A stretch of DNA of 56,925 bases, filler included, from Hydrolagus affinis (lineage: Eukaryota), in assembly GCA_012026655.1 (NCBI GenBank). It is 4 parts of 4 records of this genome, joined end to end, with 100 filler letters (N's around TTAATTAATTAA, not from the genome) between each part and the next. Parts side by side here need not be neighbours in the genome. Positions count along the whole stretch, not along the records: positions 31,740 to 42,897 come from JAAILG010024008.1; 3 more parts are not named here. One strand, 5' to 3'. Below, one piece after another: positions 31,740-42,997 of the stretch (within the stretch, counting starts at the first letter, position 1; the number at the start of each line of letters is the position of its first letter). Under the pieces are notes generated by a model, which saw only the letters and a program-made list of their open reading frames with translations, made no database searches and was not told the DNA's origin. The position numbers were made by a program, and so were the translations under genes.

Positions 31740-32431
31740 GGTATGTTAATTTTCACTGGTTTCTAAAATGGCCTTATCAATTACAAAGCTTGGTTTAAAT
31801 ATTTTTTTGGATTGAATGGATTTAATTCTGGTTTTGAGTGTGGGTTTATATACAATTGTGTTGTATGTCTATTAATTTTCCATTGAGATTTGATAACTAC
31901 TGTATATCACAACTCATTTTTTGCAAAACTGTTTTAGTTTATGAATGCTCAAAAATTAATCATGCATTTGCCAAGTGAAAAGGATTAATTGCTTTAATAT
32001 GTAAATTGCCAGTAATTTTTTTTGAAGATATCTGGTAAAATAGTTGATTGAACTTGGATCACTTCAATGGAATGGTATAGACTTTCATAAGGACTGGCAA
32101 TGGTATCATTACTCAAGCTCTCTATCATACATGTATTTGCTGCACAGAATCAGTGGTTGATGTTGCTCCATTGTCAATAAATTATTCATTAACTAATTGG
32201 TGAGTGGGTAACTAGAGCACATCAGGTTAAGATAGTTAGTGAACAAGTAAATGGAGAGGTTAGGAGAGTTTTTTATATAGTGTAGGATTCTGTAATTAAT
32301 GTTAATTAATATCTCAAATTATATTGGCGATTTGTAAACAATTGCACTTGATGGGACTTGGTTGTGACTAGTTTTGTAGAGGAGGCAAGGGATTGTGTAT
32401 AAACAGCGGGATGTTTTCAATTTATATCAGC

Positions 32432-32798
32432 TAGGGTCCGTCGATATGGAAATTTTCCGATATCGATATATTGGTGGTCTCATATCGATATCGCTGTTTT
32501 TTTTTATCCTGTGTATGCGTGCGCATTCGGAGATGTGTGCACATTCGGGGGTGCGCACGCATTCTGTGCTCTAGGCCCAGGAGGTTTGCAATGCCGGCGA
32601 CAGGATAAGTTGAAAAAGTTCGCATTATACTGATATAACCGATATATCGATATATCGCCATTTGCGATATACTGATTTTTTTTATACCGAATTTTTCGAT
32701 ACACCGATATATTCAAATTTCCAATATCGGCGTATCGATATGAAAAATTATACCGATATACCGATATAACCGATATATCGATATATCGCCGGACACTA
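32432..32798. mobile_element. hAT-type non-autonomous DNA transposon (MITE), 367 bp
   Basis: TIRs TAGGGTCCGTCGATAT / ATATCGCCGGACACTA (14/16 match); perfect 8-bp TSD ATATCAGC at 32424-32431 and 32799-32806; many subterminal CGATAT motifs. Confidence 0.88.
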
Positions 32799-33087
32799 AT
32801 ATCAGCGATTTTCTCATGGAGATATGGTCTGCAGCTGGAGAGGGAGCTGCGTTGCATTTGTTTTTGCACAGGAACCATCTTGAAAAGGACAATGGGTGAA
32901 GGGTCACCTGATGAGCTGCATAAAAAGAGATCGATTCAAGAAAGAAGGAGAGAAAGGAGAAAAAGGAGAAATCGGGAGAAGAAAGGAGAAATTAGAACTT
33001 GGAATCGCGAATCCATGTTTCAGCTTCGGAAGAAGAGAAGATCAAGACTATGAATGGAGCAACTATAGACGTACAATGGTACTGTCC

Positions 33088-33213
33088 TTGGATATCGAAC
33101 TGAGATTAGTGCAACAATACCTGGATACTTGGATATCAAGCTGGGAACGGCACAACAATACTTGGATACTTTTGGATGTCGAACTGAAAACTGTACAACA
33201 ATACTTGGATACC
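33088..33213 (+). repeat. Three imperfect tandem copies of ~41-43 bp
   Basis: CTTGGATATCGAACTG...CAACAATAC(C/T)TGGATA x3. Confidence 0.75.
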
Positions 33214-33928
33214 ATTTGATGGATTTATATTTGGACATTATCTCTCCCACAGCATTTGGTTTGGTCAACTTAAATCATTGTGAGCTATTTGTAAATGCGT
33301 AAGCATTGTTGGGATGAATACTTTTAATTTCTTATAACTATTACTAACCAGAATTAATAAACATGCATATTGATTGTACAACGTTTGTGTCAGTCCTTAT
33401 TTCACCGCAGGGTCACAAATTTAAATCAATCCTTACAACAGGATAGTTGGGGAATGGAATGGTTTGGTTGAGGCAGAATCCATATTAGTTATCGAATAGG
33501 AACTGGATAAATCCTTTAAGAGGAGTCAACAACAGAGGATACGGAAAAGGAAGGTAAATGTGTCTAAAAAGAATGCTCTTAAGGTAGCTGGAGGAGCCTT
33601 GATGCGTCGAATATCCTTCTGTGCTTTAAATTTCTATGATTCTTTTGTGTTTTGATTTTAACTTTCCTGCTTGCTTCCTCATCTGCACCAAACTCCCAAA
33701 GCCCAACACCCCAGTCCTTATCAGTCTTCACAGACTCCACTCTACAAGTAGATTCTCACTCCTCACTCACCTACAAATCTATTCACTCCTTATTTCTTCT
33801 ACCCCCACACAGCTATCTTGGGTTTTCTGAGCATCCCCATCGTTGGCTGAGCCAGTCCCTTTGTCCCTTATGTCTGGAACTACCTCTCTCTGCCATATAA
33901 GAACATGAGAATTTGCTGGGCCATCTAC

Positions 33929-35870
33929 AACAACAACAACAAAATTACACTTGTATAGCGCCTTTCACGTCGGGAGGATGTCGCAAGGCGCTGAACAGTT
34001 AGTTCGTGACCCTAGTAGGGGGGTTGGGGTTGGGGTAGGGGGAAGGGGAAAGAGAGTAGGGGAAGGGGAAGAGTTAGGAGGGGAGCCGAAGGTGTGGTCA
34101 AAGAGGAAGGTCTTGAGACCGGCTTTAAAGGAGGAAAGGGAGGAAGCAAGATGGAGGGACTGCTGGATGGAGTTCCATATTGTGGGAGCAGAGAGGCAGA
34201 AAGCCCGGCCACCAAGGGTTGGGCGGTTTGAGCGGCGGAAGCGGAGCAGGCCAGAGTCTGCTGAATGGAAGGGATGGGCAGGCTGACAGGAAGACAGCAG
34301 GTCGGAAAGATAGGTGGGGGCAAGGCCGTGAATGGCCTTGAAAGAGAGGACGAGGATATTTAATTCGATCCTCTGGGGGATGGGGAGCCAATGTAGACGG
34401 GCGAGGGTGGGAGTGATGTGGTCGCGGAGCCTGGTACAGGAGAGTACACGAGCTGCAGAATTCTGAATGATCTGCAACTTGTGAAGGGAGGAGCTAGGAA
34501 GGCCAACGAGGAGAGAGTTCCCGTAGTCGAGTCTGGAGGTGATAAAGTCGTGAATGAGAGTTTCGGCGGTATGAGGGGTGAGGTAGTGGCAGAGTCTGGC
34601 AATATTGCGGAGGTGGTGGAAGGCTGTGCCGGTCATGGAGCAGATATAAGGGAGGAAGGACAGTTCGGGGTCAAACAAGATGCCCAGATTCCTGACTGGC
34701 TTTGAGAGGTGGAGAGAGCAGCCTTGAATGCTGATGTTGTCAGCGCCTGAGGTGCGGATGCACTGACATGAGCCAATCAGGAGGGCTTCTGTCTTGTTGA
34801 CATTGAGCTGGAGGAAATTGGCCCTCGTCCAGGACTCAATGTCGGACAGATATACAGTCAGAACGCCAGTAGTCCTGGAGTCGAGGATGGATGCGGAGAG
34901 GTAGAGTTGGGTATCATCCGCATACAGTTTACCCCATGTCTGCGGATGATGTCACCCAGGGGGCTTGTGTATAAGGTGAAGAGCAGGGGACCAAGGACAG
35001 AACCCTGAGGAATGCCGCATGTGACTGTGCGAGGGCTGGAGGAAAAACCGTTCGAGGGGACGAAGTGAAGGCGGTGGGAGAGATATGACCGGAACCAGTC
35101 AAGGACACAGCCTTGAAGGTTGAGGACGGAGGAGAGGTGGTGGAGGAAGATTGAGTGATCATGGTATCAAAGGTGGTAGATACATCGAGGAGGACGAGGA
35201 GGCAGAGGGAGCCCTGGTCACAGATGGCCAGGATACTGTTTGTGACCTTGACTAGAGCAGTTTCCATGCTGTGGGAAGCGCGGAAACCCGATTGGAGGGG
35301 TTCGAGGAGTAAATGATTTGTGAGGAAAGAGCGGAGCTGGGAGGCAACCACTTTTTAGAAGACCTTGGAAAGGAAGCGGGGGTTGGAGATAGGCCAGTAG
35401 CTTGGTAGCTGTGATGCATCGAGGAAAGGCTTTTTTAGGATTGAGGTGATGGTGGCGGTTTTGGAGGGAGTGGGAACGGTCCCAGATGAGATGGACAGGT
35501 TGATAGTGTCGGTGATTAGAGGGACTAGAAGGTGGAGCTGGGTGGTGAGGAGAGGGGTGGGGGTGGTATCTAGGGAGTAGGTGGTGGGCTTCATGGAGGA
35601 GATGGTCTTAATGACGGAGGATGGTGAGATGGGGTCGAAGGTGTGGAAAGAGGGGTGTGTAGGAGGCAGGCTGTGTGGGGGAGATGAGAAGGGGGTGGAA
35701 ATTGGGGAGACAGTGACCGCAGAGTGGATTCCCTCGATTTGGGTCTTGAGGAAATCCAACATCTCTTCGCAGTGGGAGTTCGAGGAGAGGATCTGCGAGG
35801 CGAGGCGGTGGGGACGGAGGAGCTGGTTGGTGGTAGAGAAGGGAAGCTGGGGCTATCGTTGTAGCATATC
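33929..35870 (-). mobile_element. L2-type LINE, degenerate RT region and 3' tail
   Basis: [58 protein letters not shown]; (TTG)n tail at ~33930. Confidence 0.9.
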
Positions 35871-37114
35871 ACAAATTCAAGGCTCTACACAGCTGGAGCT
35901 GGGGGTGGGGGGGCAAATTTCTAAGGAATTCTGGAAACTGATCACGTTTCTGTGGGTAATAATCCCTTCAACAAAGTAATAATAACAATTTGGTCACTCA
36001 ATTCACGACTTGTTTGGGGTGTGGGCAGATGTCTCAAGGTGTCATAACCTGACTATGCAGCACCCTCAGGGGCTTGAGCGCTCAGTGTGTTACACTTTCC
36101 ATTTATCAACAAAGTGATAATTACTACGCACACAACAGGTCGCAATTTTCACAAGTTGATGTTATATCACAAGCAGGAAACCAAGATTGCAACAGAACTG
36201 CACAAAACCCTCTGATCTGATAAGTCAGCCAGAGTGCGACTCACAACCTCCGGTCACAAGCTCCGGTCTCTAGCTTTCTACATGGCCAGGACATGCTTTC
36301 AGCTGACTTTTGTCCAAGAGTCCCCACGCACAAGAAACCAAGTTTCCACGGGTTAGACAAGAGCTAACAATAAATGCTGACATTTCACAGCACAAAAGCT
36401 ACCAGCGCCCACATCAATGATTTAAAATAGAGTGGTTAATGCACGGACACAAACCAATCAGCCCATCTTGGTTTGTTTGTTGGGTTTCGGTACGGAGTGC
36501 GTGTTTAACAGGCTGGTCTTTCTAATAATAATAAGTCTGAGACATCGATAAGATGTGAAAAGCGCTATTTTAAATGCAAGGATTATTATTATTATTATTA
36601 GTGTTATAATAAAAAATAATAATCCTTGCATTTGACATACCGCCTGATCACATTTTTGAGATGTCTAAAAGCGCTTCATAGGGTACACTCAAAAGTGAAT
36701 TGACAGTATATTTTGTGAGCTTAACACAGTAGCCAATTGCTCACAGCAATCAGAGATTTTTGGAGGGACTACTGTCCGCAGAAAAGTGATCCACCAATCG
36801 ATTAACAACCAGGTTCCTACTTACTACTAGGTAAACAGAGCTATGTATGTGTGGAGTAGAGAAACTTGCCTAAGGTTTCACCTGCCCCGGAATGAAACCC
36901 AGTTCCTCTCACTTGTGCATGAGCATACAAATCACTACATAGTGTAGATTTTAAGATATTTTTATGTTGCCAGGATGTTTTCTGGTTTGGTATATTTCTT
37001 CCAAAAAGTGGAAAATAAAATCTAACAAATATCACTGAAGTATTTGATACAGAGCCTTGTGACATGAGCAAACATCAGAAATCGCTTCTTGTAAGTGCCA
37101 ATAATTAACTGCAT

Positions 37115-37131
37115 TGTGGTTTACAGGAAAT
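37115..37131 (+). promoter_or_regulatory. Adjacent Runx and Ets motifs upstream of the VJ-C1 gene
   Basis: TGTGGTTT 37115-37122 followed by CAGGAAAT 37124-37131. Confidence 0.35.
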
Positions 37132-37653
37132 AAGCAGGTTTGGCTGTGGGTTCCTCACATCAGTTCCGTGCTCACTTTCATTTTGCAGGACACATCACCA
37201 GTGATCTCCGACAGGTAGACTTATCTTCAGGTGACACAAAAACAGAAGTCACTGGGAACACTCAACAGGTCAGGCAGAATCTATGGAGTGATTCAAGTGA
37301 TACAACGTTTCAGGTCCACGACCCTTCGTCAGAACTAGGGCAAGTCGGGAGGGAGAGGGTTTTAAGGATTAGCAGAGAGTGGGGAGGCAGGGCAAGCAAG
37401 ACAAAAGAGAAAACGGGATCCTTGCTGAAGAAATTCAAGACTCACAATATGCAGGAACCTTCTTCTTAACTGCAAGTACAACAACTTGGATTGATATAGT
37501 GCCCATCATGTGGGTGGTATCTGGGAGCGTGTCGGAACTTTCAAAGAGTGATCCTTGAGTCCCACGGACCTTCCTCCTCTACTGCCCATAATCTTAACAA
37601 AACATTGGAGAATATCCATTCTCGATCTCTAAAGTGAATTGGCTTGTGAGGCT

Positions 37654-37723
37654 ATGTGTGTACGGGAGCTTAAACTGAAGAGTCTGATTATTAATGGACC
37701 TGTTGTAATAATTTCTCCGACAG
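37654..37723 (+). CDS. Candidate first (leader) exon of the VJ-C1 gene
   Basis: ATG..MCVRELKLKSLIINGPVVIISPT, phase-1 GTAGAC donor compatible with the VJ exon; hydrophobic core weak. Confidence 0.35.
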
Positions 37724-38723
37724 GTAGACGTATCTTCGAGTGAAATGGCCATGTTAATCTGCTTCTACTTGGTGCTGTCACACACAGGTATGGAGCTTGT
37801 GAGCAATAACGTGAAGCACTCTGAACCTCTAACTCGCGTGTTTGGGTGCTAGATAAATGCAAGATGTTATTGTTGTTGAACATGGCTGTGAAAAACTGAG
37901 ATGGAAAAGCACATTGGAGTATGTAAAGTTAAAAGTGACAATGGGTCAGTGACTGGATGTAGTTGTGGAATATAGTGGTTAGATTACTTGCCTTGCAAGC
38001 GAGAGGACCTGGGTTTGATTACTGACTTGGGTGAAACGTTGGGCAAGTTTTTTTTTAACTTTACACGCCTCTGTTTGCCTAGCATTAATTGTTGTTAATC
38101 AATTGGTGGATTGCTTTCCGTGAGTAATAATCTCTTCAAAAATATACTATAATAATTTGGTTACTTGATTCACAAATTTGTGGGCGCAATTGGCTGCTGT
38201 ATTTCATCCTCGAATCATAATTCACTTTACAGTATATTCCATGAAGCTTTTTGAGACGTCTTAAAGATGTGTTAAGGCGCTATGTCAAATGCAAAGATTA
38301 TTATTAACAAAAGGGTTGATAGGATATGCAATGACCTGCTGGTTATACTGGGTCAGCCAAGATTTATTAACTTTCCAGAGGAAATGTGATAGATATCTAG
38401 AGAGGAATAAGCGGGTTAGGGTATTAGATTCCTAACATTCCTTCCTTCCTTAACATTCCTGCCTTCCCTAACCTGCCTTCTTCTGTGCTGTAAATGTCTA
38501 TTCAGTGCAGGATGTCGAGTGGGATGAAATGTGGTCCATGATAATTTTTGCAGTATAAAATGCGCTAACACACTTTTTGTTTCTACCTCTGACAGGCTGA
38601 GTTCAATTTGTTTGGTTTGAATTCTTGGCTTGTGAGGCTGCGTGTGTACAGGAGCTTAAACTGAAGAGTGTGATTATTAATGGACCTGTTGTAATAATTC
38701 CTTTCTGAATCACTTCCCTCCAG

Positions 38724-39083
38724 CAAGTCAACTGGCTCATCAGACTTTGCAGCAGTTTTATGCTCTTACCACATTGAAGGGAGACTGTGTGACATTGAGT
38801 TGTCTGTACCAAGAACCTTATTTAGAAAGGTTTACAGTGAAATGGTATTTCCTGTCTGATACGCTGAACTCCACCGAGAACATCGCAACATTATCATCTG
38901 AAAGTAGTCTGGTGAACAACTCTCACTATGCTGTCGGGCACGCTGTCACGAATAAAAGATTTACTCTGCAAATCAAGGATGTTCAAGTCAGTGACAAGGG
39001 AGAGTATTACTGTAGGTTGTTGGTAACTCTACCACCTCCGACAGTTACAAAAATGGGAACAAGAACGAGGCTGAATGTGACCG
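38724..39083 (+). CDS. Germline-joined VJ-type Ig domain exon of a non-rearranging IgSF gene
   Basis: CCTCCAG acceptor, GTAATT donor, phase 1-1, open; VTLSC, VKWY, LQIKDVQVSDKGEYYC followed without RSS by a J-like strand MGTRTRLNV. Confidence 0.88.
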
Positions 39084-40042
39084 GTAATTACTTCACACAT
39101 TTGATGAATTAGATTTGTTGCTCCATGGGTGATGGGTGGGGGTGGTAGGGGTGAATGGAGGTAAGAGGGGTCGCCTCGGAGCTGAACTGGCCCCAAGGTG
39201 ATATGTTTGACAATGGAATGTCAGAATCAAGCCCACCCTCTGTGACGGTCTCTAGTCCCGGATCATGAGCCAGACTGAGGTCCGCAGTATATCCAGGGCT
39301 TTCTCTCTCTCGCTCGCTGCTGATGACAGCACAGTCCAGCCTGGCTCATCGGCAGGACCTGGAAGGGCAGACCATTCACTGGGGGTCCTGTTAACCCTGC
39401 AGCCAAAGCCCAAACGGGTCTGTTGTTCCCAGTGACAAACGTAAGCGCTATATCAAATGCAAGGATTATTATTATTATTATAATAATTTCGCTGGTAAAA
39501 CTCCACCCAACCCTGGCATACAGGGGACTTTACTTACTTACTGAAATCTATGCCACAAATAGATGAATTTCAAGATCCTCACAATCCTTTTCAAATCTCT
39601 TCATGTCGTGGCACCTCCCCTACCTCCCAAACCTAGTTACCCTCCTGCTCCACTCGCTGTGTCTCATCTCGACTGAATCCGGCCTCGTGAGTTCAGTTCT
39701 ACTATCGGTGGTCGCAATTTCAGCACCAAATCTCTGGAAGTCTATTCCTCCGCTTTGCCCTCTTCCTTTCCCATCTGAAGATTGCACCTGTAGACCTTCC
39801 TGTTTGACTGTGCCTAACATCTGCTGTCCCCTCCCCCAGCTCCACATCGTGCTCCGCCACTCTCTAGTTCTCTGGGACACTACCCTGCAAGAGGGGAGCT
39901 GTGTAATTTCACGTTGTTGTAGTTGTTGTATGTATTGGCACAGTGTCCTGTCCACTAGAGCCACACTCATTGTGACACACTCTATCTGTTGCACTTGGAT
40001 TCACTCTCTTGTAATTTCTCTTCTGTTTCCTTTTGTAACTAG

Positions 40043-40363
40043 CTAGGCCTTCCCTTCGGATATTTCCATCTGTTCCTATGGAAAACTCTTCTTCCCGATG
40101 GGTCTCGGTCTCATGTTTGGCAAGTGGCTTCTACCCAGAGTCTATCGAGATGAGATTTCACAGCACCTGCCTTGCCCATCGCCTCACAAAATGGACGCTC
40201 TCCACTCCGACCAGAAACTCTGACAGAACCTACAACATCACAGCCGGTGTCTGTGTCCCCACAGCGACCTGCACTGAGGGAGCCCACATCACATGCACCG
40301 TCCGGCACCCAGCATTGCAGTCGGAGATAAACCAGACTGAGTTCATAATCCCACCACACAAGG
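40043..40363 (+). CDS. C1-set Ig domain exon of the same gene
   Basis: AACTAG acceptor, GTATGT donor, phase 1-1, open; ARPSLRIFP, VSCLASGFYPESI, RNSDRTYNI, ITCTVRHPAL. Confidence 0.88.
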
Positions 40364-42897
40364 GTATGTTACACCTTACTCAATACAATATTTCCATTTA
40401 TGTCGCTGTTGGTGTCACTGTTGACTTCTGGTCTTGATTTTGTGAAATTCCCATCAATTGATTAATCTGTGGAGTCCTGTAGCTCAATGATTAGAGCCCA
40501 CGCCTTACATGCAGGAGACCTGGGTTCAATTCCAGGCAGGCTGCAACGTTGGGCAAGTTTCCTTACCTCACATGCCTAATAATCCCACAAAAAAATAATA
40601 ATCAATTGGTCATTTCAATCCATGACTGTTTGTGGGACATTGTTGTGTGCGATCGGCTGCTGCGTTTCGCCCACAAATATACAGTCAATTCACTTTACAG
40701 TCATCAAATCAAAAACAGTGTCAGAGTGCTTCTCTGACTTTTTATAATAATAATAATTCTTGCATTTGATATAGCATCTTCTAGAGCAAAGTGCTTCACA
40801 GAATATACTGCAAAGTGAATCGACTGTAGACTTTATGGTTGAAATGAAGCAGCCAATTGCACACAGCAGTGTCCAACAAACAGATGGTGATTGAATGACA
40901 GCATTTATAAAATATATATTTATTAATCGTTCAATTAGGAAAGCAATCCGCCAATCGTCTAACAGCCGGGTTCCTACTGATTGCTAGGTATACAGAGGGG
41001 TATGGAGTAAGGAAACTTGTCTAATCTTTCACCCTGCACGGGAATTGAACCTGTTGTTTGTGAAGCTCTCACCACTATGCTACTCCATGAAGAAGTTCCT
41101 CCTAAACTACCTGTTAGATCTTTTCGTCGTGAAAGGCGCTATACAAATGTAATTTTTTTGTGGTTGTTGTTATTGTTGCTGCTGCCTCGCTTGTATATTT
41201 GTGCGCCCTCATTTCTGAAATATTTTTAGCTTTTGGTTTCCACGAAATGCTAATGTGTAAAGGTCACACGGGAAGCAACAGCTCCACAATGAGAGTGCAG
41301 TGCAGCCCGAGACAGCGCTACTGTAACCTGCGCACGTCTCAGTGTTTCCATTGATCAGTGCAGCAAGCGGAGAGCAGCCTGAAGCTCTGTGGCGTGAACT
41401 CTTAATGTTGCACCTTCGGTAGCTCAGGCAATCCATACTCCACCTTATGCCATTTCAGGCGTCCTGTGGTTAGATGAATTTATATATACGCACACAGCGA
41501 GGCCACCTGTATAAAACCACACGGAGACTCAGGGCGTAGATACCCGAAGTTGGGTGGCGAACGTGCAAATATGTCCAGGCTGTTTAGCAACAGGTTTGAG
41601 CCACCTCCCCCCCATCTTACCTCAACACATTGGTAGGACCAGAAGCTGTTGATGGCTGCCATTGTAGGTGTCAAGTGTGGCATTTTGTGCTATGGCGGGA
41701 CTGGACTCAACTCAACCAAACGATTGGAGGCTAGACAACAACAAACGATAATAATCCCTCCAAAAAAACCTATAATACAGGTAAATTGGTATTTTCAATC
41801 CACGACCGTTTGTGGGACACTGCTGTGCACAATTGGCTGCCGCGTTTCACCCACATAAAATGTGTATAGCTGCGTACAGTTAATTCAGCATATTCTGTGA
41901 AGTGCTTTGAGATGTCTACAAGACACTATGACAAATAGAAGGATTATTTTTTACTACTATTATTATGTGGAAACCACCCTTCACGTCAGGAGGATGTCCT
42001 AAGGTGCTGGACTGTCTGTCTGGGGTTTGGACCCGACCTGAGGATTGGGATCAGGAGGTGTTAAGGAGAGTGGGTGTAGGAGGGTGACTGAAAGTACAGT
42101 TGAAGAAGAGTCGGACCTTGAAGGAGGAAAGGAAGTGGGTGAGGTGAAGGGACTGTGGGATGGAGTTTCAAAGGGTTGAAGCAGAGAGGCTAAAGGCCCG
42201 ACTGTTGATGGTGGGATTGGCTGGAACAGGCTGGAGCCTGTTGAAAGGAGGTAGAGGACAGGTCAATATGGCAAGACAGTTAGACAGTATCTGTCTTCCC
42301 TTTGACTCCTTTAGTTGAGTTGAGTGCAAGCCATGCCCTGGGGACCATTGTAATAGTGGACACTGTTTTGCTGAAGCTGGGGTGGAGGGGAGCTGGGGTT
42401 GTGGGGAGGGTAAGAGAGGAGTTACATCCATAGGTGGGGAATAATTGCCCACTTACCTGAACGGTGGATTTCAATGATGGGATAATCATCTCAAAAGTTC
42501 CATCTCAAATCATTTCCTAACGGGATCCCTGCTGAAGAAATTCAAGACTCACAATATGCCAGAACCTTCTTCTTAACTGAGAATACAACAACTTGGATTG
42601 ATATAGTGCCCATCATCTGGGAGCGCTCAGACTCCCTATACTTCTGACATGTTCCTGCAGGTGGAGGGGAATTCTGAATATACTTGTGGCTGTGGGAAGA
42701 GCGGTGCAGATGGGGTTCGGTTCAATTTGCATCATTTAGGTGTAAGCCTGGCATTGTTGAGTGCACTGTTTTTCAGAGAAGATATAAACTCGGGTTCCAA
42801 AGGCTTGCTTGGGTGGATGTTAAAAATATAATTTGGGCAAGTTTCCTTACTCCACACACCTGACAATAATCCCTCCAAAATTTTAAAAATAATTTGG

Positions 42898-42997
42898 NNN
42901 NNNNNNNNNNNNNNNNNNNNNNNNNNNNNNNNNNNNNNNNNTTAATTAATTAANNNNNNNNNNNNNNNNNNNNNNNNNNNNNNNNNNNNNNNNNNNN
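42898..42997. other. Scaffold gap with artificial linker
   Basis: Ns with TTAATTAATTAA at 42942-42953. Confidence 0.97.

Follow-up and report, generated by a model that had tools for sequence, protein, structure and literature searches.

Genes in which a variable (V) domain and its joining (J) strand share one exon, followed by a C1-set constant domain, serve as models for what the RAG transposon split, and few examples are available: SIRP, PRARP, NKp30, UrIg, and UrIg2. Here we analyzed a stretch of 56,925 nucleotides (nt) from the chimaera Hydrolagus affinis (GenBank assembly GCA_012026655.1), hereafter the window, which consists of four parts from four records of this genome joined end to end. 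The piece at positions 31740–42897 (JAAILG010024008.1; all coordinates count along the window) carries a gene of this VJ-C1 kind, with leader, VJ, and C1 exons on the plus strand. We conclude that these exons are probably the 5′ half of a chimaera-lineage gene that is transcribed, does not rearrange, and encodes a type-I membrane receptor, as a member of a family built as VJ domain, C1 domain, transmembrane segment, and cytoplasmic tail.

Among the described systems, PRARP reportedly has a non-rearranging VJ-type V domain, a further immunoglobulin (Ig) domain before the transmembrane segment in non-avian species, and an ITIM (immunoreceptor tyrosine-based inhibitory motif) in its cytoplasmic part. 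It is said to occur in bony fish, amphibians, reptiles, and birds, and its second domain is reportedly of the C2 type; to our knowledge, cartilaginous-fish members are not part of its description. SIRP carries a pair of C1 domains along with four tyrosine motifs, and CD28HL3 and PD-1 signal through ITIMs or immunoreceptor tyrosine-based switch motifs. PRARP (Fu et al. 2019) is cited as a joined-VJ gene family linked to the major histocompatibility complex (MHC). Elasmobranchs have two VJ genes that do not rearrange, UrIg and UrIg2, of which UrIg2 is linked to the Ig heavy-chain and T-cell receptor (TCR) α/δ loci (Flajnik et al. 2025, PMC12227049); UrIg2 has 9–11 C domains in sharks and IgG-like dimers (PMC12227049). 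According to Quiniou et al. (PMC11599192), CD28-family members have a single V domain and never a C1 domain, and CD28X, which signals via EYEDM and belongs to a pudp/sts/anos1 synteny block, has the FG loop Y-x-C-x6-PPP-x4/5-G-x-G, compared there with that of CTLA-4.

Gene model

The gene model on the 31740–42897 piece comprises the following features:

37745–37787, plus strand: leader exon; ATG and 14 codons (MAMLICFYLVLSHT), plus one base of the next, split codon; phase-1 donor gt at 37788.
37788–38723, plus strand: intron 1, 936 nt, with gt..ag ends; contains a high-copy block resembling a short interspersed element (SINE) at ~37.9–38.3 kb.
38724–39083, plus strand: VJ exon; acceptor ag at 38722–38723, donor gt at 39084–39085; codons 38726–39082, 119 amino acids; phase 1 at both ends.
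39084–40042, plus strand: intron 2, 959 nt, with gt..ag ends; polypyrimidine tract before 40043, SINE tail at ~39.44–39.6 kb.
40043–40363, plus strand: C1-set exon; acceptor ag at 40041–40042, donor gt at 40364–40365; codons 40045–40362, 106 amino acids; phase 1.
40364–42897, plus strand: start of intron 3, mostly SINE-like repeats, running to the assembly gap at 42898.

The leader, V, and C1 exons were all free of stop codons, with phase-1 junctions and canonical splice sites. The acceptor of the V exon is pyrimidine-rich (…cttccctccag) and its donor side reads gtaatt, and the C1 exon is immediately preceded by …ttttgtaactag and immediately followed by gtatgt. When joined, the three exons gave 241 codons without a stop and with six N-glycosylation sequons, the split codon at the V/C1 junction being G+CT (Ala). 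The V piece matched the Pfam V-set (E = 2.1e-12) and the second piece the Pfam C1-set (E = 1.5e-10). An earlier reading of this DNA made from the sequence alone (the sequence-only reading) had proposed two stop-free, phase-1 exons with canonical splice sites that encode a V and a C1-set domain, and both the sequence and the Pfam matches bear this out.

If the C1 donor was left unused, the frame at 40364–40437 would add 24 codons (GMLHLTQYNISIYVAVGVTVDFWS), forming a short hydrophobic tail, before a stop (open reading frame (ORF) 40078–40437).

A germline-encoded VJ domain and a C1 domain

In the V exon, the landmarks Cys26, Trp40, and Y-Y-Cys96 are followed by RLLVTLPPPTVTKMGTRTRLNVT, with PPP in the FG loop, and by the J-like G strand MGTRTRLNVT. 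Because the frame of the exon continues through the J-like strand, the G strand, which is supplied by a J segment in Ig and TCR genes, is germline-encoded in this exon. The J-like motif is imperfect, with G-T-R in place of the G-x-G diglycine bulge and Arg (AGA) at the second Gly. No recombination signal sequence (RSS; heptamer, 12/23 spacer, and nonamer) was found after the V-coding end, and the sole RSS-like string in the piece was a nonamer match at 6 of 9 positions on the minus strand of intron 2. Unlike a rearranging Ig or TCR V segment, the exon thus has no RSS and its frame runs to a splice donor; with neither RSS nor separate J segment, there would be no somatic diversity. The proposal of a non-rearranging V domain with a built-in J-like G strand and no RSS therefore held, both in the RSS scan of the piece and in the frame through the G strand.

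AlphaFold models of the V and C1 domains were built from the family alignments described below. The V model (predicted local distance difference test score, pLDDT, of 92) showed C′ and C″ strands and a G strand broken at T112–R113, which is the position of the bulge. In a Foldseek search of the PDB, the best 50 matches of the V model were all TCR α/δ V domains, at 19–24% identity, TM-scores of 0.76–0.84, and E values of ~1e-10 to 4e-9. These domains are thus the nearest solved folds, and the chimaera domain resembles them with its G strand interrupted at the bulge position. The C1 model (pLDDT 82) had IgNAR C3, IgG CH3, and IgM C4 as its top structural matches, a likeness to the C domains of Ig heavy chains. 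The C1 exon reads SCLASGFYP...ITCTVRH and has an additional conserved Cys pair (C42 and C76). In sequence searches of the PDB with the chimaera V domain, a TCR δ V domain (1tvd) ranked second and PD-1 V domains were among the best full-length matches, and a full-length orthologue aligned over its entire length with the light chains of Ig and with Fab heavy chains.

Orthologues in jawed vertebrates

An exhaustive HMMER search with the V piece returned many multi-Ig proteins, together with a set of single-stretch, full-length matches that were V-C1-transmembrane proteins. The latter came from rays (Hemitrygon, Narcine), sharks (Stegostoma, Scyliorhinus), the spotted gar (Lepisosteus), amphibians (Bombina, Ambystoma), and turtles, and a profile search added members from Rhincodon, Chiloscyllium, Pristiophorus, Heptranchias, Heterodontus, Mustelus, and Hyla. 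Mammalian TRA/TRD V segments were also among the HMMER matches. In the databases, the family members carry automatic names such as 'tyrosine-protein phosphatase non-receptor type substrate 1-like' or SIRP-alpha-like, 'immunoglobulin kappa light chain-like', and 'uncharacterized'. Neither bird proteins nor further chimaera proteins came up when the family profile, a turtle protein, and the Callorhinchus fragment were used as queries, and the clusters retrieved from the ESM Atlas were all generic V-C1 ones (tapasin-related, SIRP, and Ig-like).

The orthologues share the architecture of leader, V(J) domain, C1 domain, transmembrane segment, and cytoplasmic tail. In alignments with 11 homologues each, the chimaera sequence kept all invariant columns of the V domain (Q10, G19, C26, W40, F42, H72, L81, G92, Y94, C96, P103, P105, T114, L116, and V118) and of the C1 domain (P2, C24, F29-Y30-P31, C42, D60, C76, C84, and I101). 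Its identity to the elasmobranch orthologues was 34–44% for V and 37–48% for C1. The maximum-likelihood tree of V plus C1 reproduced the species tree, (turtle,(gar,(chimaera,elasmobranchs))), and the cartilaginous-fish clade had a support of 89/91.

Exons were mapped onto the genomic loci of four orthologues (whale shark, electric ray, gar, and tortoise). Each locus had a leader exon of 45–54 nt, a single V(J) exon of 345–363 nt, a C1 exon of 297–315 nt, a transmembrane exon, and two to three cytoplasmic exons, with phase-1 boundaries. The six-exon layout was common to whale shark, electric ray, and tortoise, and the gar gene had the same layout with one extra cytoplasmic exon. The C1 exon was directly followed by the transmembrane exon, at a distance of 0.09–7.2 kb. 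The Ala codon split at the V/C1 junction was the same in all four mapped orthologues, and the chimaera leader exon is like their leader exons in length, hydrophobicity, and phase.

In its invariant columns, exon phases, junction codon, and clade, the chimaera gene agrees throughout with the VJ-C1 family of sharks, rays, gar, amphibians, and turtles that bears a transmembrane segment and ITIMs (P0152, P0151, P0165, P0033, P0111, and others in our protein set), and it is an orthologue or co-orthologue of that family. It is a new and apparently unannotated chimaera member of a family that is already in public protein sets under misleading names. Since orthologues occur in elasmobranchs, gar, amphibians, and turtles, the family is older than the divergence of cartilaginous from bony fish. 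The sequence-only reading had named germline-joined shark Ig light chains, tapasin, and B7-H6 as groups with which the gene might cluster instead; no such clustering was found, and the orthologues carry a transmembrane segment and ITIMs in cartilaginous fish and gar.

The closest match of all was a Callorhinchus milii model (P0008, UniRef A0A4W3J4B0), with 63% identity over the second half of the V domain. The last ~100 residues of this model form an odd C-terminal tail, which matched the end of the chimaera intron 2 and the C1 exon in the wrong frame. P0008 is therefore best read as a mis-spliced model of a very similar gene, in which the C1 domain is hidden in the entry.

In Ambystoma mexicanum (P0146, P0015), one isoform consisted of a V domain, a transmembrane segment, and an ITIM without C1, and another model read V-C1-V-C1-transmembrane, so the number of domains varies among the tetrapods of the family.

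Cytoplasmic motifs and the FG loop

Two ITIM-type motifs exactly 20 residues apart, together with a strongly hydrophobic transmembrane segment, were present in all ten elasmobranch sequences checked and in gar (for example, ICYAEL … IVYSTV; pattern ICYAEL ... I/VVYSxV). The family pattern of the FG loop was Y-x-C-x6-P-P-P-x5-G-x-(G)-T-x-L-x-V, in which PPP is invariant or nearly so. The chimaera FG loop (YYCRLLVTLPPPTVTKMGTRT) was scored as having PPP and GxG, though its second G is R.

As a type-I receptor, the chimaera protein would have an ectodomain built like one antigen-receptor chain, with a germline G-strand V domain and then a C1 domain. Judging from the orthologues, the missing 3′ exons beyond the gap would encode the transmembrane segment and two ITIMs 20 residues apart. 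On that basis, the best-supported mechanism would be that of a germline-encoded inhibitory surface receptor, in which the face of the V domain would bind a ligand, possibly a B7-like one, and the phosphorylated ITIM tyrosines would recruit SHP-type phosphatases. Receptor diversity would come from the germline only, with no V(D)J (variable, diversity, and joining segment) recombination.

Transcription and constraint

RNA reads of a single sample, in three stranded poly(A) runs, were aligned to positions 37700–42897. RNA depth was found on one strand only, which is the strand expected for plus-strand RNA in most stranded libraries. In run X13, the depth was 4.0x in the leader bin (37700–37873), 4.9x and 7.5x in the V bins, and 3.5x and 9.4x in the C1 bins, and the other two runs were lower. 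Depth was ~0–0.6x in the unique intron bins (39092–39265 and 39614–39787) and in the unique downstream bins. From this exon-restricted coverage, we infer that the leader, V, and C1 exons are spliced together.

Between the V and C1 exons and the read sets there were 12 base differences, of which six were silent, a small sample that fits purifying selection. In the DNA contigs of one run, each unique segment was covered once at single-copy depth, and no paralogue closer than 92% was visible there.

Comparison with PRARP, SIRP, and the CD28 family

The family has the same architecture as the one reported for PRARP, and the ranges of the two overlap in gar, amphibians, and turtles. The chimaera gene has the J-like G strand in one exon without RSS, and one constant-type domain lies between V and the transmembrane segment in the family; the transmembrane segment and ITIMs are present in the shark, ray, and gar orthologues, the corresponding chimaera exons not being on the contig. 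There are two differences: the second domain is reportedly C2 in PRARP and is clearly C1-set here, and the cited MHC linkage of PRARP contrasts with the NLR-type gene and GTF3C6 beside the gar and ray orthologues. On balance, we lean towards equating the VJ-C1-transmembrane-ITIM family with PRARP. The suggestion of a PRARP-like or chondrichthyan family member, made in the sequence-only reading, thus stands as the best available label for a VJ-C1 gene whose orthologues have a transmembrane segment and ITIMs. If the family is PRARP, the range of PRARP is extended to the base of jawed vertebrates, and conserved shark sequences are gained for rooting V and C1 trees.

SIRP-alpha (PTPNS1) is similar in having a V domain with a J-like G strand, C1-set domains, a transmembrane segment, and cytoplasmic ITIMs, and NCBI names the catshark and Narcine orthologues 'SIRP-alpha-like'. 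A SIRP structure (PDB 2wng) matched the full-length orthologue with E = 1.2e-15, which is in the same range as Ig light chains. However, the SIRP ectodomain is V-C1-C1, compared to the single C1 domain here, and the PPP motif of the FG loop is absent from SIRP. The layout of PPP and GxG in the FG loop is a likeness to CTLA-4 and CD28X, as are the PD-1 V domains among the best full-length PDB matches. In contrast to the CD28 family, the chimaera gene has a C1 exon after V, and neither EYEDM nor the pudp/sts/anos1 synteny applies.

A rather unlikely alternative is that the genes form an unnamed gnathostome VJ-C1-ITIM family that is neither PRARP nor SIRP, characterized by a TCR α/δ-like V domain, a CTLA-4-like loop, and a neighbour with a B7-like V domain in ray and gar. 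The gene in the window would then be the first from a chimaera in an ancient pairing of inhibitory receptor and ligand that branched near the stem of the antigen receptors.

Genomic neighbourhood

We found no further Ig-domain exons in 31740–42897, either by scanning for the hallmark pattern of the Ig fold or by tblastn with 17 V-C1 proteins. In the electric ray (Narcine), the gene adjoining the orthologue encodes V-set, NACHT, and NLRC4_HD2 domains (L004:33935–35648, plus strand). In gar, the orthologue is flanked on one side by an NLR-type gene encoding V-set, NACHT, NLRC4_HD2, and LRR domains and on the other by GTF3C6; the V exon of the NLR-type gene (L001:3596–3991, minus strand) reads as a B7/butyrophilin IgV domain (…GNASLFL…DSGTYIC). 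The V-set plus NACHT neighbour of ray and gar has two possible readings: synteny with a B7-like or NLR gene, possibly a ligand partner, has been conserved, or a fusion of gene models has recurred. For the whale shark and tortoise orthologues, no gene was called within 10 kb.

Weighing the alternative explanations

Several points weigh against the receptor interpretation. No transmembrane or cytoplasmic exon was found in 40364–42897 by tblastn with 17 family proteins and a hydrophobicity scan, the hydrophobic stretches there being confined to low-complexity repeat sequence. Membrane anchoring and inhibitory signalling of the chimaera copy are what we infer from the orthologues, as the transmembrane and ITIM exons are absent from the contig; with orthologue transmembrane exons as far as 7.2 kb after C1, the chimaera exon is probably to be sought past the gap at 42898. 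In turtles, the proteins have a single ITIM or lack it, so that not all of the family would be inhibitory. In the J-like GxG, Arg replaces the second Gly in the chimaera gene and Ser replaces it in Narcine, whereas Callorhinchus P0008 has GTG. The RNA and DNA reads differed by ~1–2.5% from the window and thus came from another individual or a close relative. The best-supported splice joints, which were the ones listed, all came from SINE copies, and exon joints were not readable among them.

The lack of a transmembrane or cytoplasmic exon in the 2.5 kb after C1 would also suit a copy that is truncated or decaying, or else a soluble product, in which only the leader, V, and C1 exons are functional or present and neither a transmembrane segment nor ITIMs exist. 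The change of GxG to GxR, the mere 24 residues that read-through of the C1 donor adds before a stop, and the V-only and shortened isoforms predicted in stingray and axolotl point the same way. We consider this improbable: none of the three exons has a stop and their splice sites are canonical, C1 has a good phase-1 donor at its end, like the orthologues whose transmembrane exon follows up to 7.2 kb downstream, transcription is strand-specific and confined to exons, and of the differences between the exons and the read sets, half are silent. Membership in the UrIg/UrIg2 family of non-rearranging shark 'antibodies' would account for the single-exon non-rearranging VJ, the split leader, and a C1-set domain in a cartilaginous fish, and UrIg2 (PDB 9dmx) was the top whole-chain match of the C1 family profile and the second for the chimaera C1. 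This rank is, however, the sum of three C domains of ~20 bits each, compared to ~25 bits for IgG CH3, and the UrIg2 V was not among the best 60 matches of the chimaera V or its profile, nor is the chimaera V closest to that of UrIg. Shark UrIg2 has 9–11 C domains, and at least three C1-type domains follow VJ in the UrIg system, whereas a single C1 followed by a transmembrane exon is found in the orthologues; the neighbours of the ray and gar orthologues also differ, linkage being to the MHC for UrIg and to the Ig/TCR α/δ complex for UrIg2, and UrIg and UrIg2 are reported from elasmobranchs only. With no notable V match, a summed C-domain rank, and this number of C domains in UrIg2, the chimaera gene is most improbable as a UrIg. 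Still less probable, to the point of being negligible, is a germline-joined Ig light-chain gene of the cartilaginous-fish kind. The automatic name 'immunoglobulin kappa light chain-like' is attached to several of the shark orthologues, and light chains align along the whole ectodomain, but identity to light chains is low, the orthologues have transmembrane and ITIM exons, the family extends to gar, amphibians, and turtles, and the FG loop is a conserved PPP motif rather than a junction of complementarity-determining region 3.

The sequence-only reading had placed the gene in a TCR α/δ V array, between two segments with an RSS (V11 and V12), as a VJ-C1 relic that would be deletable upon rearrangement of upstream V segments and would descend directly from the gene split by the RAG transposon. 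In its favour, the nearest solved structures of the V model are all TCR α/δ V domains, the TCR δ V domain 1tvd is the second-best PDB sequence match, mammalian TRA/TRD V segments occur among the HMMER matches, and the contig is only 11 kb long between its gaps. The structural likeness to TCR V domains is, however, only at 19–24% identity. V11 and V12 both lie outside 31740–42897 and the window joins unrelated pieces, so the adjacency is a product of contig concatenation. Over its 11 kb, the piece itself has neither an RSS nor a V segment, and no Ig-domain exon besides the V and C1 exons of the gene. The ray and gar orthologues have no TCR neighbours and adjoin an NLR-type gene and GTF3C6, and within 10 kb of those of whale shark and tortoise no neighbour was called. 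The embedding in the array thus had no support, and neither had the deletability or the idea that this is the very gene that the RAG transposon split; we still allow the array a slight chance and rate it as very unlikely. The locus accordingly adds no second TCR-linked relic beside UrIg2, the claim of TCR linkage having come from the assembly of the window. The type-I receptor gene of the VJ-C1 family therefore remains the probable explanation of the leader, VJ, and C1 exons.

Repeats and the remainder of the piece

The remainder of 31740–42897 consists of SINE-like repeats and a cluster of degenerate retroelement-like ORFs on the minus strand. The features other than the gene are as follows:

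37639–37716 (copy 1, shortly 5′ of the leader exon) and 38625–38702 (copy 2, just 5′ of the V acceptor), plus strand: 78-nt direct repeat, 94% identical.
~37.9–38.4, 39.44–39.6, 40.47–41.18, 41.7–42.05, and 42.75–42.9 kb, both orientations: SINE-like elements of very high copy number, which dominate read depth.
33965–35762, minus strand: three long ORFs of 237, 140, and 135 amino acids, resembling degenerate remains of retroelement ORFs.

The minus-strand ORFs at 33965–35762 had no Pfam match at E <= 0.01. Some of the SINE-like copies have a tRNA-like head and a tail of the form '…GCGCTATATCAAATGCAA…ATTATTATT', and no tRNA was called in the SINE-like blocks by ARAGORN. Read depth was at the level of repeats at 37874–38395, which is the SINE-like block of intron 1.

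A further direct repeat of 103 nt (37412–37514 and 42519–42621) was 93% identical between copies 5.1 kb apart. A tandem gene copy was considered for this repeat and rejected, as alignment of the flanks showed only a shared element of ~110 nt and no duplicated gene unit. The bin with copy 2 of the 78-nt repeat was at ~2x single-copy depth, which points to a local two-copy duplication.

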